The notes below the pieces were generated by a model. That model was not told the origin of the DNA. It searched no databases and saw nothing but the letters and a program-made list of their open reading frames with translations. Of a DNA stretch of 64,000 nt, positions 443 through 15,549 are shown piece by piece. The number at the start of each line of letters is the position of its first letter. Positions within the stretch are counted from its first letter, which is position 1. Location: sequence record LC778249.1. One strand, 5' to 3'. A program made the translations under genes and the position numbers.

Positions 443-593
443 TGTTTAAAAATTAAGAAGTCTTTGTTTACACTCACTAAATAGTAGTGTATAGTAAACA
501 AAGATTGGAATGAGTTCAGCAAACAACTTAAAAAGCAAATTATTGGAAATATGCCTTAAAAGTTCATTCCGTTTCTTATTCAGTTGTTATTGG

Positions 594-678
594 GGAAGTG
601 TGGCTCAAAGGTTGAGCGGCAGACTGTTAATCTGCGGGTAATAACCCTATGCTGGTTCGAGTCCAGCCTCTTCCGCCA
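594..678 (+). tRNA. tRNA-Asn(GTT), long variable arm
   Basis: GCAGA-CTGTTAA-TCTGC anticodon arm, T arm GCTGG-TTCGAGT-CCAGC, G73 + CCA. Confidence 0.9.
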
Positions 679-702
679 ATAACAATTTTAAAGATTTACC
701 AC

Positions 703-807
703 GGATCATTACAGCAAACCAACTAACTTTTCTCTTCTAAGAAAACGATAGGGTTCGACTCCCTAGCTCTGGTAAAAGAGTCCTTGGACGGTAGTAAAAA
801 GTGATCC
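703..807 (+). ncRNA. Circularly permuted tRNA-like RNA with TACAGCAA motif (Arg TCT-like loop)
   Basis: GGATCAT/GTGATCC terminal helix, TACAGCAA, CTTCTAA loop, T arm TAGGG-TTCGACT-CCCTA, loop-closed GCTCT/AGAGT helix. Confidence 0.65.
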
Positions 808-813
808 AGTTTT

Positions 814-888
814 AGCCGTGTAGCTCATTGGTAGAGCACTCCCCTGATAAGGGAGGGGTAGACAGTTCAACTCTGTCCACGGCTACCA
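814..888 (+). tRNA. tRNA-Ile(GAT)
   Basis: AGCCGTG/CACGGCT acceptor, CTCCC-CTGATAA-GGGAG, CCA. Confidence 0.95.
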
Positions 889-908
889 AATTTAATGTTT
901 TGATTTAC

Positions 909-983
909 GCCGACTTAGTTAAATCAGAATAACTCGGGATTTGTAACCCTGAATCGTCGGAGCATAACCGGCAGTCGGCACCA
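909..983 (+). tRNA. tRNA-Thr(TGT), atypical T loop
   Basis: GCCGACT/AGTCGGC acceptor, TTTGTAA loop, T loop AGCATAA, CCA. Confidence 0.75.
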
Positions 984-1064
984 AGTTTATACACCATGAT
1001 TAAATCGGCAGATGCCTTGCTCAATGAGTTCGTTTGGTGAGTATTTTTCGAATAGAGGAATACA

Positions 1065-1559
1065 ATGAAGGATGTAGTTGGTTATGAGGGTTTATTCTCA
1101 ATAACCGAAGATGGAAAGTTATGGTCGAAACGTAGTAAACGATTTTTGACTATAATGGTAAATAAACAAGGGTACTATCAACATTGTACTAAAATCGGTG
1201 GTAGAAATGGGACTGCTAAACTGTTCAAGATTCATCGAGTTGTTGCAGAAGCATACTTGCCGAATCCCGATAATCTACCATTGGTAAATCACAAAGACGG
1301 AAACAAGTTAAATAATCATGTTTCTAATCTTGAGTGGTGTACGCACCAACATAATGTAAGACATGCTATTGATACGGGTCTTCTTGTTCAGCCAAAGGGT
1401 GAAAAATCAAAGGCGTCCACACTGACACAAGAGCAAGCCAATGAGATACGAAAATCTTACATTCCAAGGGTTATAACCTTATCTATGTTGGCCGATAAAT
1501 ATTCGGTATCTCGTAGAACAATCATCCGAGTTCTGCATAACATCAGATACAATGATTGA
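1065..1559 (+). CDS. HNH homing endonuclease (NUMOD4-like N-terminus, HNH_3, C-terminal HTH)
   Basis: KDVVGYEGLFSITEDG start; VNHKDGNKLNNHVSNLEWCT HNH motif; GAGGA RBS. Confidence 0.9.
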   Translation: MKDVVGYEGLFSITEDGKLWSKRSKRFLTIMVNKQGYYQHCTKIGGRNGTAKLFKIHRVVAEAYLPNPDNLPLVNHKDGNKLNNHVSNLEWCTHQHNVRHAIDTGLLVQPKGEKSKASTLTQEQANEIRKSYIPRVITLSMLADKYSVSRRTIIRVLHNIRYND

Positions 1560-1569
1560 TATACTAACA

Positions 1570-1738
1570 GAATTTCAGCGTGAAATCGACCGATGCCTAA
1601 AGGGCAGCGACAGATAGCCGATCCGATGCGTAGTTGGAAGAAGGGTTGCTGAAAATCGATGTGGGATCCAGACGCCCCAATCGCAGCGTCTGGTATGTAA
1701 CTCGTTACATGAATGATTTCTTTCGAGTGATTATTCAT
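1570..1738 (+). ncRNA. Candidate structured non-coding RNA
   Basis: TTTCAGCG/TGCTGAAA, CCAGACGC/GCGTCTGG, ATGTAA/TTACAT and ATGAATGAT/ATTATTCAT helices in an intergenic region. Confidence 0.45.
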
Positions 1739-1814
1739 GTGACGGTAGTTCAGTCGGTAGAACTCCAGGTTGTGATCCTGGTAGTCACGGGTTCGAAGCC
1801 CGTCCGTCACCCCA
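1739..1814 (+). tRNA. tRNA-His(GTG)
   Basis: GTGACGG/CCGTCAC, CCAGG-TTGTGAT-CCTGG, C73 + CCA. Confidence 0.95.
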
Positions 1815-1819
1815 AATAT

Positions 1820-1895
1820 GGACCTGTAGCTCAGATGGTAGAGCACCGGATTGAAAATCCGGGTGTCGTCAGTTCGATCCTGACCGGGTCCACCA
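1820..1895 (+). tRNA. tRNA-Phe(GAA)
   Basis: GGACCTG/CGGGTCC, CCGGA-TTGAAAA-TCCGG, CCA. Confidence 0.95.
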
Positions 1896-2106
1896 ATTAG
1901 TCGAGTCTTGTTGTTGGTCATGACTAACAACGTGGCGACAGGCTATAAAAAGCGATAGATTGAAGAAGGGGCGAATAACTTAAACGTTACTATTGACTTC
2001 TTCGCGCTTCTTATTACTTGGGCTCATGAGCAGAGTGATAGTTAAATCTCCTTACAACACCATGTGTTGATTATTGCCTCGGTATCTGATATTCTGGATA
2101 CCGTCT

Positions 2107-2181
2107 GGTGCATTAGCTCAGAGGTAGAGCCGCGGTTTCATACGCCGCTTGTCGGTAGTTCGAATCTACCATGCACCACCA
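2107..2181 (+). tRNA. tRNA with CAT anticodon (elongator Met likely)
   Basis: GGTGCAT/ATGCACC, GCGGT-TTCATAC-GCCGC, CCA; Met vs Ile2 not decidable by eye. Confidence 0.85.
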
Positions 2182-2226
2182 GATAATCGCGCTTAAACCG
2201 CTGATTAACACGTTTAAGCCTTCTCG

Positions 2227-2300
2227 GGGGACGTAGATAACTACACAATCGCAGGTCATTGGGACCTGAGATACGGGTGGAAATCCCGTCGTCTCCACCA
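2227..2300 (+). ncRNA. tmRNA-TLD-like mini RNA (alanine acceptor, no D stem)
   Basis: GGGGACG/CGTCTCC-A-CCA with G3:U70; unpaired 18-nt D region; capped CAGGTC/GACCTG helix; T arm ACGGG-TGGAAAT-CCCGT. Confidence 0.6.
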
Positions 2301-2435
2301 AATTTAAGTGCATTGCCCTATACACCATGAGGCGAGATAAGCCCTCGCACGAAGCAAACGAGCCGCAAGCTTGTAGCAATCAAAGGCTAGTCAGTGGGTA
2401 CTACCTGACGGGATCGCGACAGTGCATTTAAATTT
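2300..2435 (+). ncRNA. Candidate multibranched structured RNA
   Basis: 16-bp closing helix 2300-2315/2420-2435 with internal GCGAG/CTCGC and GTCAG/CTGAC hairpins. Confidence 0.45.
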
Positions 2436-2470
2436 GGTACTAAATAGACTTGCTAGTAAAGGAGTTTATA

Positions 2471-2719
2471 ATGAGTAATGATCTTGACGCTCGCGCCAAT
2501 CGTGGCTCGGGTAATCAATGCAGTAAAGCTTGGTACGACGCCCCATTGTGGAAAAATGTTGGCCCATTAGCTAGAAAGAAAGCAGCCGAAGCCGCTGCTA
2601 AAGCCGAAAAAGAAAAAGAAGTTGTTTACAACGCTACTGAAACATGTAATAATGATTCTGTTGTCGTTGAAGACGATTTAAAAGCGAAGCAACGAAAATT
2701 GTTTGCCTTTGCATACTGA
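2471..2719 (+). CDS. Hypothetical protein
   Basis: GGAG RBS, downstream of ACTAAATA at 2439-2446. Confidence 0.7.
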   Translation: MSNDLDARANRGSGNQCSKAWYDAPLWKNVGPLARKKAAEAAAKAEKEKEVVYNATETCNNDSVVVEDDLKAKQRKLFAFAY

Positions 2720-2794
2720 TCTCCGTTCATCTAACGGCTAGGATATCGCCCTTTCACGGCGAGTACACGGGTTCGAATCCCGTACGGAGAACCA
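2720..2794 (+). tRNA. tRNA-Glu(TTC)
   Basis: TCTCCGT/ACGGAGA, TCGCC-CTTTCAC-GGCGA, CCA. Confidence 0.95.
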
Positions 2795-2814
2795 ATTTTG
2801 TTAGTGCGCTATGA

Positions 2815-2890
2815 AGCGGGATGGAGAAGTCTGGAATCTCGTTAGCCTCATAAGCTAAAGGTCGGTGGTTCAAATCCACCTCCCGCTTCA
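2815..2890 (+). tRNA. Initiator-like tRNA-Met(CAT), no encoded CCA
   Basis: fMet-like D arm TGGAGAAGTCTGGAATCTCG, CTCATAA loop, T arm GGTGG-TTCAAAT-CCACC; acceptor extended by 12 bp (2803-2814/2888-2899). Confidence 0.8.
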
Positions 2891-2912
2891 TAGCGTACTA
2901 AATAAAGAATAC

Positions 2913-3004
2913 GGAGACGCTGCAATGACGGTGGTATTGCACCAGACTGTAAATCTGGCCCCACAGGGTGAACATTGTAGGTTCGAATCCTACCGGCTCC
3001 ACCA
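2913..3004 (+). tRNA. tRNA-Tyr(GTA)
   Basis: CCAGA-CTGTAAA-TCTGG, long variable arm, CCA. Confidence 0.9.
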
Positions 3005-3033
3005 AATTTAATAAGTCAATAACGAGGTATACA

Positions 3034-3120
3034 ATGATTCCGATAGTGTTCCTATGTGATAATGATCACAGTGGTTGTCACCCAAACGGATGTTATTATT
3101 GTCCACATTATTACTTGTAG
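3034..3120 (+). CDS. 28-aa Cys/His-rich micropeptide (not in ORF track)
   Basis: GAGGT RBS then MIPIVFLCDNDHSGCHPNGCYYCPHYYL*. Confidence 0.55.
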   Translation: MIPIVFLCDNDHSGCHPNGCYYCPHYYL

Positions 3121-3127
3121 TTTAAAC

Positions 3128-3202
3128 GGTGCATTAGTATAATGGCTATTATTCGTGACTGTCTATCACAGGATACGGGTTCGATTCCCGTATGTACCGC
3201 CA
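3128..3202 (+). tRNA. tRNA-Asp(GTC)
   Basis: GGTGCAT/ATGTACC, CTGTCTA loop, G73 + CCA. Confidence 0.92.
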
Positions 3203-3268
3203 GTTTCTGCCTAGCAGGAAAGAGAACTTACCCGACAAAGTTTAGTTCTTAGCTCTTTGATTATCGCT

Positions 3269-3416
3269 GGATTCACTACAGCAAAACCTAAAATACAAAA
3301 CAAACTCTACTATTAAATGGATAGCACTCCTTTACTTCGGTAGTTGGATGTGCGGCTGAGAGGGAACAGCATATAAAAGTAACGGCGGGTTAGTCACCGC
3401 TCCCATATGTGAATCC
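3269..3416 (+). ncRNA. Large motif RNA (helix + TACAGCAA)
   Basis: GGATTCAC/GTGAATCC terminal helix, TACAGCAA 3277-3284, several internal hairpins. Confidence 0.55.
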
Positions 3417-3486
3417 GAAGACTTGCGATAACCACTTGCAAATAGTGGTTATTCTAATGTATAATCACGATTGTATATTAGAATTT

Positions 3487-3562
3487 GGGGATATAGCTCA
3501 GTTGGGAGAGCACTAGCCTTGCAAGCTGGGGGTCGTGGGTTCGAGTCCCATTGTCTCCACCA
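3487..3562 (+). tRNA. tRNA-Ala(TGC)
   Basis: GGGGATA/TGTCTCC with G3:U70, CTTGCAA loop, CCA. Confidence 0.95.
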
Positions 3563-3572
3563 AATTTAAATC

Positions 3573-3648
3573 GCGTGATTAACTCAGTTGGTAGAGTGTC
3601 AGCCTTCCAAGCTGTTCGTCGCCCGTTCGAGTCGGGTATCACGCTCCA
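3573..3648 (+). tRNA. tRNA-Gly(TCC)
   Basis: GCGTGAT/ATCACGC, CTTCCAA loop, U73 + CCA. Confidence 0.93.
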
Positions 3649-3655
3649 AATTAAC

Positions 3656-3730
3656 GCGCAGGTAGCCAAGCGGTAAGGCAAGTGATTGCAAATCACTTTA
3701 TCGTCTGTTCGATCCAGATCCTGTGCTCCA
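3656..3730 (+). tRNA. tRNA-Cys(GCA)
   Basis: GCGCAGG/CCTGTGC, TTGCAAA loop, U73 + CCA. Confidence 0.93.
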
Positions 3731-3746
3731 CATTGAGAAATAATTT

Positions 3747-4172
3747 ATGAGCGCACCTAGTTATGCGCTGTTCATGAAGAACGGCGATTGTGTCGGGAAC
3801 TGCTTTATCAACTGCGGTTGGTGGCATGATGAACCAAGAACACTGAGACAGATTATCCGGTATACCGAAACCGATGAATGTCCTATCGACTATGATAGTG
3901 TAATCGCGTATGGTGTTACCTATAGCAATGACTTGGAATTCGAGCTTCTGAAAGCAGAAGAAACGGAAGCTAAGTTGAGAGAAATTGCTGAAAATAAGCG
4001 TAAGCAAAGTTGGGAAGATTTACATCAGAAGATGATCGAACGGACGAAACCGATTGATCGAATGCTTCCTGAATTGATCGCTGCTGAGATATGCGGAGTT
4101 CAGCCAATGACTGGTCATGTTCCTAACGTTTTTTCGTTGAAGGTAGTTTACGGCGATGATATTTCTTGCTAA
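3747..4172 (+). CDS. Protein with C-terminal T4 gp23 Gol-peptide-like segment
   Basis: DRMLPELIAAEICGVQPMTGHVPNVFSLKVVYG resembles T4 gp23 RRAIPNLIAFDICGVQPMNSPTGQVFALRAVYG. Confidence 0.75.
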   Translation: MSAPSYALFMKNGDCVGNCFINCGWWHDEPRTLRQIIRYTETDECPIDYDSVIAYGVTYSNDLEFELLKAEETEAKLREIAENKRKQSWEDLHQKMIERTKPIDRMLPELIAAEICGVQPMTGHVPNVFSLKVVYGDDISC

Positions 4173-5182: not shown

Positions 5183-5258
5183 AGGGGTATCGCCAAGTTG
5201 GAAAGGCAACGGATTTTGATTCCGTCATTCGCTGGTTCGAGTCCAGCTACCCCCGCCA
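5183..5258 (+). tRNA. tRNA-Gln(TTG)
   Basis: ACGGA-TTTTGAT-TCCGT, T arm GCTGG-TTCGAGT-CCAGC, G73 + CCA. Confidence 0.92.
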
Positions 5259-15154: not shown

Positions 15155-15283
15155 TTGTTGACGCGATTAGCTCAGTGGGAGAGCGCCTCTGATCGCAGAG
15201 AAGTATCGGGACCGGTTCGAATCCGGTATAGTGTGGGCACACCGAGAAACGTCGCTGGTTCGAATCCAGCATCGCGTCAACAA
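15155..15283 (+). ncRNA. Expanded tRNA-like RNA with two T arms
   Basis: 13-bp acceptor-like helix, D arm GCTCAGTGGGAGAGC, T arms ACCGG-TTCGAAT-CCGGT and GCTGG-TTCGAAT-CCAGC; no CCA. Confidence 0.7.
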
Positions 15284-15420
15284 ACAGCATTATGCTGGCG
15301 GTTCGTCTAGTGGTAGGACACTGTAAAATTCATTCTGATAAGAATGTATTCCGCAACAAATACTCGCCTGTTAAGCCTGTAACCTGGGTTCGAATCCCAG
15401 ACCGCCAGCATAGTGTTGTT
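15283..15420 (+). ncRNA. Expanded tRNA-like RNA with inserted TTCCGCAA motif module
   Basis: 20-bp acceptor-like helix, D arm, CATTCT-GATA-AGAATG hairpin then TTCCGCAA, CTGTTAA loop, T arm CTGGG-TTCGAAT-CCCAG. Confidence 0.7.
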
Positions 15421-15428
15421 AAAAATTT

Positions 15429-15549
15429 GGGGAAGTAGCCGAATTGGTATAGGCAATAGTCGAAAAATCGGATTCTGTCAAGAATCTTTACGGCAACTAA
15501 ATCGAAATCAAACTGTCGTATGTGGGTTCGAGTCCCACCTTCCCCTCCA
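15429..15549 (+). ncRNA. Expanded tRNA-like RNA with inserted TACGGCAA motif module, CCA end
   Basis: GGGGAAG/CTTCCCC-T-CCA, D arm, GGATTCT-GTCA-AGAATCT then TACGGCAA, T arm GTGGG-TTCGAGT-CCCAC. Confidence 0.72.

Follow-up and report, generated by a model that had tools for sequence, protein, structure and literature searches.

The purpose of the many tRNA genes found in large phages is debated, and many of these genes are dispensable. The Bacillus cereus pseudo-tRNA known as tRNA-Other can be charged, has altered D and T loops and takes little part in decoding. Non-proteogenic tRNA-Gly species of Staphylococcus aureus have a T loop with G55, bind only weakly to EF-Tu and the ribosome, and function in cell-wall synthesis (PMC7826273). 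In phage T4, two stable RNAs whose function is unknown, RNA C (species 1) and RNA D (species 2), are encoded next to tRNA-Arg (PMC3014915, PMC9697503), and three tRNAs classed by tRNAscan as 'pseudo' were counted, without description, in the Aeromonas phage Aeh1 (Nolan et al. 2006; PMC1524935). Here we describe an element of 74 nucleotides (nt), encoded CCA included, at positions 2227–2300 on the + strand of a 64-kb window, the whole stretch of DNA analysed, which is 100% identical to Aeromonas phage phiWae14 (LC778249.1; window position equals record position minus 62000). The element is a non-canonical phage tRNA or tRNA-like gene with an Ala-type acceptor and a YUG triplet in its anticodon loop, as indicated by a match to the Rfam tRNA family RF00005, by ARAGORN at a relaxed threshold and by conservation; a new mechanism is not demonstrated. 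By standard criteria it is a tRNA-like RNA or pseudo-tRNA and not a fragment of transfer-messenger RNA (tmRNA); an earlier note on this DNA had presented it as a mini-tmRNA.

phiWae14 is a T4-type phage with relatives in the Straboviridae (genera Chrysonvirus, Angelvirus and Cinqassovirus). Its tRNA cluster fills the first 7 kb of the window, in which ARAGORN called 21 tRNAs and Rfam returned 21 tRNA matches, and the element is placed inside this cluster of 20-plus tRNA genes, between tRNA-Met (2107–2181) and a small open reading frame (ORF) at 2471–2719, here named ORF82. No annotation covers the element in phiWae14 or in any related record, and its omission from all nine genomes illustrates how annotation pipelines silently drop non-standard tRNA genes. 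The element joins a perfect alanine charging signal to an altered elbow and to an anticodon loop that would not be expected to decode, and through it one could test whether phages produce chargeable tRNA-like RNAs for uses beyond codon reading. Our preferred explanation, to which we assign a probability of roughly one half, is that it is a functional, chargeable, poorly decoding tRNA-like RNA derived from a diverged accessory Ala-type tRNA gene.

tRNA membership, charging identity and elbow

In a local search of 301 nt, the element scored 38.2 bits against RF00005 (gathering threshold 29; E 8.6e-7) and aligned to model positions 1–71 of 71. Default ARAGORN and the Rfam gathering pass on the window did not call it, and fast filters lost it in both 64-kb and 8-kb searches; ARAGORN at its relaxed threshold (-ps80) drew a cloverleaf and labelled it tRNA-Gln(ttg). 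The folding z-score of the element was -3.35. The tRNA invariants U8, A14, G53:C61 and A58 were all present, as judged from the alignment to the Rfam model and from the sequence.

The acceptor stem is formed by GGGGACG (2227–2233) and CGUCUCC (2290–2296; CGTCTCC in the DNA) and includes the pair G3:U70 (2229:2294), followed by the discriminator A73 at 2297 and an encoded CCA at 2298–2300, all of which are read directly from the sequence just as the earlier note had described them. All seven pairs of this stem were invariant across 7 phages. With G2:C71 and G4:C69, the alanine-accepting features G3:U70 and A73 that the note had recognized form a set that was complete and invariant in all copies and makes the element a predicted substrate of alanyl-tRNA synthetase (AlaRS). 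AlaRS reads G3:U70 together with A73 and the adjacent acceptor pairs and ignores the anticodon, and the element should therefore be alanylated if it is made and trimmed to CCA. On the strength of its acceptor sequence, host AlaRS probably charges it with alanine. The identity rules of the glutaminyl enzyme (GlnRS), as known from E. coli, comprise G73, a weak 1:72 pair, G2:C71, G3:C70, U35, G36, A37 and U38; the element fits only G2:C71, U35 and G36 and departs from the rules with A73, G1:C72, G3:U70, G37 and G38. A genuine tRNA-Gln(UUG) at 5183 has the GlnRS-type acceptor features G73, A1.C72 and G3:C70. In phiWae14 alone an extra, fifth G at 2226 precedes the acceptor stem (CTCGGGGGACG against CTCGGGGACG in all relatives), and the RNase P cleavage site could be shifted or blurred by it.

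The anticodon-type arm (2252–2268) consists of CAGGU/ACCUG and the loop CAUUGGG, with the triplet UUG (CUG in relatives) and G37. A short capped helix had been proposed in place of an anticodon arm, and what we found is an arm of normal size, with 5 base pairs (bp) and a 7-nt loop, or 6 bp and 5 nt if C32:G38 pairs. The loop has the 7 nt and purine-37 of a canonical anticodon loop, yet it carries A33 in every copy, and C32 and G38 are complementary. U33 is nearly universal in tRNAs and is needed for the U-turn. Because A33 replaces U33 and C32:G38 could close the loop to 5 nt, decoding would be inefficient, and the element should be a poor or inactive decoder.

The D region (2236–2250) has a possible 3-bp stem, GAU/AUC, with an A.A mismatch, and a 7-nt loop, ACUACAC, that lacks G18G19. 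The T arm (2273–2289) pairs ACGGG with CCCGU around the loop UGGAAAU (2278–2284), in which G55 G56 replace pseudouridine 55 and C56 and U54, A58 and G53:C61 are kept; both this TGGAAAT loop and the AGAT ahead of the T stem were present as noted earlier. Across the copies, the D loop (ACUACAC or ACUUCAU) and the T loop (UGGAAAU or CGGAAAU) thus deviate from the elbow consensus of G18 G19 with T54, pseudouridine 55 and C56. The cluster also contains the separate, normal tRNA-Ala that had been pointed out before, a canonical tRNA-Ala(UGC) called by ARAGORN at 3487–3562. With canonical tRNA-Ala such as this one, the element shares the 7-bp acceptor stem with G1:C72, G2:C71, G3:U70, G4:C69, A73 and CCA, the 5-bp T stem with a 7-nt loop keeping U54, A58 and G53:C61, and U8 and A14. 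In contrast to it, the element has no NGC anticodon, has A33 and a pairable C32/G38, has a D stem of 3 bp with an A.A mismatch and no G18G19, and carries G55 G56 in the T loop. Its location and its A/U-rich 3' trailer are of the same kind as those of the genuine tRNAs of the cluster. No close paralogue was found in the cluster, the best global alignments being to tRNA-His, to an odd Thr-type gene described below and to tRNA-Ala; an 8-nt match, TTGGGACC, to the anticodon arm of tRNA-Pro(UGG) may be due to chance.

The altered elbow has a counterpart in a tRNA-Ala(UGC) located in a small phage-like tRNA cluster on the metagenomic contig Ga0315284_10548962, hereafter L024. This tRNA shares with the element the UGGAAAU T loop, A-C instead of G-G at D-loop positions 18–19 and a nearly identical acceptor stem. 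The L024 D loop reads AGUUACUA, and positions 18–19 are A-C in L024 and phiWae14 and U-C in the relatives of phiWae14. The L024 tRNA-Ala departs from the element in its regular D stem of 4 bp, in its canonical anticodon loop (U33, UGC, A37) and in a variable region of 5 nt. Between the two, pairs 6:67 (C:G in the phages, U:A in L024), 51:63 (G:C to A:U) and 11:24 (A:U to C:G, with the D stem read by hand) have changed on both sides. Because the search pattern that reached L024 fixed the T loop and the 3' strand, the independent similarity lies only in the D loop, the 5' strand and the flanks. We infer that a swapped C19:G56 pair replaces G19:C56 and that the element's elbow probably still forms. 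As this T loop and its D-loop partner also occur in a tRNA-Ala whose anticodon loop is normal, the odd elbow is a tRNA variant and not a tmRNA trait, and the data suggest one elbow variant (A/U18-C19 combined with G55-G56) common to the element and to an apparently normal phage tRNA-Ala.

Other tRNAs showed odd loops as well. An unannotated tRNA-Thr(UGU)-type gene at 909–983 (+) has a normal anticodon loop, a D loop without GG and the T loop AGCAUAA; it scored 43.1 bits against Rfam and was called by ARAGORN at the relaxed threshold only. In L024 (positions 1–700, - strand) all tRNAs, comprising Ala, two Gln and Tyr, are without GG in the D loop, and the T loops that were read (UGGAAAU, UGCAAGU and CGCAAAU) all have G55. 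In these phages, elbows of non-standard type are thus not uncommon.

Conservation among Aeromonas phages

The element was detected by blastn in nine phage genomes (phiWae14, phiAS5, avDM12-TAAL, AsFcp_1, AsFcp_2, AsFcp_4, PX29, Ah1 and Aeh1) and nowhere else among 50,697 phage records, with queries of 299 nt and 74 nt. Complete copies in seven other genomes, which represent the genera Chrysonvirus, Angelvirus and Cinqassovirus, were 92–97% identical to the window over 74 nt, and the copy of AsFcp_4, which is partly unread in its record, was 91% identical over 63 nt. The eight complete copies contained 0 indels, in comparison to several in the flanks.

A feature-by-feature comparison was made of phiWae14 with phiAS5, Aeh1, PX29 and Ah1, three of which are distant, and gave identities of 93–97% for the element. 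Against the three distant relatives, identities were 79–82% for ORF82, 74–86% for long spacers, 84–86% for the structured RNA that follows the element and 83–97% for canonical tRNAs. With the neighbouring non-tRNA ORF and spacer DNA taken as background (16–20% divergence), the element showed 4–5 differences in 74 nt where 12–14 were expected (binomial P 0.002–0.007 for the three relatives). Both halves of the element were equally conserved. Seven sites varied, four of them in loops (A/T at 2243 and C/T at 2246 in the D loop, U/C at position 34 and U/C at T-loop position 54) and three in stems, including a change from G:C to G:U at position 40 that keeps the pairing. The acceptor stem, G3:U70, A73, A33 and G55 G56 were unchanged in all copies.

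Searches anchored on the ORF82 protein returned four of the known phage genomes and two metagenome contigs from ENA, L158 and L159. L159 carries the Ah1-type variant of the element; L158 falls near the avDM12/phiAS5 type, with genes in the same order (His, Phe, Met, RNA, ORF, Glu, Met, Tyr, Asp). Remote homologues were sought with a pattern covering the T loop and the acceptor 3' strand, GGNGGAAATCC(N4-5)(G)TCTCCACCA. In viral_contigs this pattern gave the same four genomes and a degenerate 3' half (15 bits) at 525–635 (+) of the 120-kb viral contig L157, a tRNA-like remnant whose T arm is that of the L024 tRNA-Ala. Among its 13 loci in metagenome_contigs, 12 were chance matches in coding DNA and one was a real tRNA-Ala, that of L024, and its eight loci in genome_contigs were all due to chance. 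The pattern CCACCAANTTTNAGTGC matched at least 120 loci in viral_contigs, and among the matches fetched none outside the known phages was found at a tRNA-like 3' end.

Weighing of the explanations

Under the preferred explanation, the element would be co-transcribed with the tRNA cluster, RNase P would cut its 5' end, and its 3' end would be freed from a long helix formed with the downstream RNA; the 19-bp duplex in question is the kind of substrate that RNase III cuts. Host AlaRS would charge the product with alanine. The element would descend from a phage tRNA-Ala that was later no longer needed for decoding, given the canonical tRNA-Ala(UGC) at 3487, and it may have been retained for a role that constrains the whole molecule. 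Such a role would be non-essential, because L158 carries a deletion of the element, and the even conservation of both halves argues that the element is more than a relic or a handle for RNase P. It is plausibly one of the three 'pseudo' tRNAs counted in Aeh1.

Several observations weigh against this explanation, and the first concerns the fold. Nearest-neighbour energies were -28.4 kcal/mol for a D-stemless fold, -21.6 kcal/mol for the cloverleaf and -30.3 kcal/mol for the minimum free energy (MFE) structure. In the D-stemless fold, AUC at 2248–2250 pairs with GAU at 2270–2272, C32:G38 is formed and the D region is left unpaired. The cloverleaf lies 8.7 kcal/mol above the MFE, the second largest such gap among 22 cluster tRNAs, for which the median was about 2.6 kcal/mol (tRNA-Trp 7.5, tRNA-Tyr 16.1). 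The absence of a D stem claimed in the earlier note therefore holds for the fold preferred by the energy model, whereas a 3-bp GAU/AUC stem (2236–2238/2248–2250) is available and is used by both the tRNA model and ARAGORN. Energy models leave out tertiary contacts, and for this reason the gap does not settle the fold; nor can the relatives choose between the folds, as neither AUC nor either of the GAU triplets varies among them. Within the nine phages there was no covariation, the stem pairs being either invariant or changed on one side only, and the cloverleaf remains unproven, with the energy model favouring the D-stemless fold by about 7 kcal/mol. Two substitutions break the T stem, namely A49:U65 to A.C in AsFcp_2, AsFcp_1, Ah1 and L159, and G52 to A (G:C to A.C) in AsFcp_1 alone. 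Short inter-tRNA spacers are likewise 89–100% conserved, and the conservation of the element may thus be partly regional. In L158, the junction ACTACCA|AATTTAAGTGCATTGCCC joins tRNA-Met straight to the downstream RNA; the spacer hairpin upstream of the element and the element itself have been lost cleanly between direct repeats ACCAAAT, which makes the element dispensable or accessory in at least one natural relative.

Decay offers one alternative reading, in which the element is a functionless relic, either a decaying tRNA duplicate that persists in a slowly evolving, recombining tRNA block or a mere transcript spacer. We consider this rather unlikely. The abnormal anticodon loop, the weak D stem, the two T-stem-breaking substitutions, the failure of default gene finders to call the element, its absence from L158 without other visible change, the equal conservation of nearby short spacers and the tRNAscan 'pseudo' calls in Aeh1 (PMC1524935) would all suit a relic, but the deficit of differences (4–5 against 12–14 expected), the equal conservation of both halves, the lack of indels beside flanks that have several, and a G3:U70 pair that never drifted to G:C in any copy argue for constraint. 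If the element were only a tolerated relic, the lesson would be that a G3:U70 acceptor and an odd T loop are insufficient to call a tmRNA-like domain. A decoding-competent hybrid, charged with alanine through G3:U70 and reading CAA/CAG with UUG or CUG so that alanine replaces glutamine at a low rate, appears highly improbable. Its 7-nt loop does hold a YUG triplet in which U35 and G36 are invariant and the wobble position alone varies (U/C), position 37 is a purine, the fit to the tRNA model is complete, and a loop-closing 32:38 pair is also drawn for a real S. aureus tRNA-Gly (PMC7826273). Against these points stand A33 in place of the near-universal U33, the real tRNA-Gln(UUG) with GlnRS-type acceptor features at 5183 and the harm that Gln-to-Ala substitution across the proteome would do to phage proteins too, and no phage tRNA combining alanine identity with a Gln anticodon was found reported in the literature. 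We also regard it as unlikely that the element is an alanine-charged, non-decoding RNA kept for an extra-translational job, either as an alanine donor or as a decoy or sink for a host factor recognizing the acceptor/T-arm half (EF-Tu, AlaRS, SmpB or a tRNA-directed defence enzyme); such an RNA might act with the neighbouring structured RNA, in whose closing helix the element's CCA end is sequestered. More doubtful still is a chargeable decoy or donor that works outside decoding and not via SmpB, titrating a tRNA-directed defence nuclease or modifier or feeding alanine to a non-ribosomal transferase. The retention of the AlaRS identity set with loss of decoding features is compatible with it, phage tRNAs are known to counter tRNA-targeting defences (PMC10264068), and the replacement of U55 by G55 is also seen in the staphylococcal non-proteogenic tRNA-Gly, which resembles the element in its altered D and T loops and which itself lacks pseudouridine, is chargeable and contributes little to ribosomal decoding (PMC7826273). 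Being chargeable yet largely excluded from the ribosome, that tRNA sets a precedent for a role outside decoding, but it differs from the element in amino acid, host and lineage, in its usable anticodon loop and in having a partner enzyme (FmhB/FemAB). For the phage element no partner protein was identified, the same elbow occurs in the apparently ordinary decoding tRNA-Ala of L024, abundant host tRNAs would compete with a decoy, and L158 dispenses with the element.

The least probable of the readings considered is the one closest to the earlier note, that the element is a stand-alone tRNA-like domain (TLD) of tmRNA type which is charged with alanine and bound by host SmpB, and which dampens trans-translation or frees stalled ribosomes untagged. 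With the TLD of tmRNA (RF00023; E. coli ssrA) the element has in common a T arm and the Ala acceptor with G3:U70, A73 and CCA, and its energetically preferred fold has the same topology, a three-way junction in which the D region is unpaired and a variable region is absent. That it holds no message was borne out, as there is no tag reading frame in or after it; in the 145 nt on its 3' side no reading frame is shared between clades, single-base indels shift the frame, and there is no common tag ending. The Ala acceptor does not discriminate tmRNA, however, because it is common to every tRNA-Ala. The sole match to an Rfam tmRNA model was to tmRNA_permuted, with 11.7 bits against a gathering threshold of 47 (E 2.2), and spans only the T arm, the acceptor 3' strand and CCA, as it would in any tRNA-Ala; ARAGORN -m reported no tmRNA at the default, 80% or 60% threshold. 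As low scores against full-length models would be expected of a TLD-only RNA, the model test is weak when taken alone. More specific is the TLD consensus (from Rfam, and seen on E. coli ssrA), with GG..UUCGAC in the D region, GGAC ahead of the T stem and the T arm GGGUUCGAnUCCC (GGUUCGAnUCC); none of these motifs occurs in the element, which has UAGAUAACUACACAAUCG, GAGAU and GGGUGGAAAUCCC respectively and a T loop that is not of UUCGA type. The arm under the junction is exactly the size of a tRNA anticodon arm, unlike the long P2 helix of tmRNA, pseudoknots are absent, and the unusual T loop and D loop are also found in the ordinary tRNA-Ala of L024. A phage TLD-only RNA was not found reported in the literature. 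Together with the end-to-end match to the tRNA model, these results speak against the mini-tmRNA label. The note had named a restored D stem and a TTG anticodon in homologues (a degenerate tRNA-Gln) as evidence against its own reading, and such evidence was obtained in part, as every homologue has a possible D stem and a YUG (Gln-type) triplet.

The downstream RNA and other features of the cluster

The element is directly followed by, and overlaps in its last bases, a conserved structured RNA of about 140 nt (2297–2438, +), in which a 19-bp closing helix (2297–2315/2420–2438) encloses three to four hairpins. The 5' strand of this helix, ACCAAAUUUAAGUGCAUUG, begins with the element's A73-CCA and pairs with CAGUGCAUUUAAAUUUGGU. 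Folding z-scores were -3.64 and -4.85, the consensus fold has one compensatory pair, and the RNA was present in all relatives. It matched no Rfam family. No conserved reading frame was found in it, and a hidden tag message was ruled out on this ground. In L158 the RNA is attached to tRNA-Met instead, so that it requires a tRNA 3' end and not this element specifically. The element is thereby tied to a conserved, unclassified RNA on tRNA 3' ends, in a setting like that of T4 RNAs C and D.

In L024, the tRNA-Ala is followed by an RNA of about 145 nt with a 12-bp closing helix that starts two bases past CCA. The closing helices of the L024 and Aeromonas-phage RNAs are similar in sequence (AATTTTGAGTGC against AAATTTAAGTGC), and four pairs have changed on both sides in a MAFFT alignment. 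A covariance model of the Aeromonas-phage RNA (R1) detected neither the L024 RNA nor T4 rnaC and rnaD, with filters on or off. Because of this result, the link to L024 comprises only architecture, trailer similarity and the four compensatory pairs, and these sequence comparisons suggest homology of the two RNAs. T4 RNAs C and D resemble the phiWae14 RNAs as small non-coding RNAs next to tRNA genes in a T4-type phage, and the fold of T4 RNA C includes a terminal stem and a T arm of tRNA type. Unlike the element, which has ordinary tRNA length, RNA C is 139 nt long, has a canonical UUCGAAU T loop and lacks an Ala acceptor. Between T4 RNAs C and D and the downstream RNA there is no similarity by sequence or model and the folds differ, only the genomic setting being alike.

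An 11-mer trailer, ACCAAATTTAA, was found at the 3' ends of tRNA-Ile, the element, tRNA-Tyr and tRNA-Ala (885, 2297, 3001 and 3559, +), and its complement, at 2428–2438 (-), is the 3' strand of the closing helix of the downstream RNA. In total, five matches were found in comparison to 0.1 expected by chance. Given the complement in the closing helix, the downstream RNA could pair in trans with those pre-tRNA ends.

Upstream of the element is the tRNA-Met(CAU) gene (2107–2181, +), which in L158 lacks the element behind it and is fused straight to the downstream RNA. The spacer between this gene and the element contains a conserved hairpin, GCTTAAAC...GTTTAAGC (2191–2219, +), of which the stem is kept and the loop varies, and which is absent in Aeh1 and L158. 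On the 3' side of the structured RNA, ORF82 (2471–2719, +) is a small conserved ORF of 82 amino acids assigned to PHROG 5438 (function unknown). A promoter and terminator scan found no + strand terminator in 500–4000 and no promoter-like site convincingly placed for the element or ORF82, the best + strand match (2445–2472) overlapping the ORF82 start codon. The tRNA cluster also contains an ORF at 1065–1559 (+), which matches HNH homing-endonuclease families (PHROG 59, E 2.7e-45, over the middle part only of the profile) and is comparable in position to segB of the T4 tRNA cluster.

Two further regions contain unusual tRNA-like sequences. In L158, about 80 nt between tRNA-His and tRNA-Phe (166–245, +) include an acceptor-like GGGAGC/GCTCCC, a TCCG-TTCAAAT-CGGA T arm and CCA and were not called by ARAGORN; in phiWae14 the distance between tRNA-His and tRNA-Phe is only 5 nt. 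Outside the cluster, two Rfam tRNA matches of 118 nt each were obtained at 15161–15278 and 15429–15546 (+) of the window. The default ARAGORN call of Ala(cgc) at 15161–15235 looks wrong. In its intron mode, ARAGORN reported three tRNAs in 15161–15546 (Ala-cgc, Arg-tcg and Arg-acg) with inserts of 26–43 nt in the anticodon loop, and one of these inserts contains the T-arm-like sequence CCGGTTCGAATCCGG.

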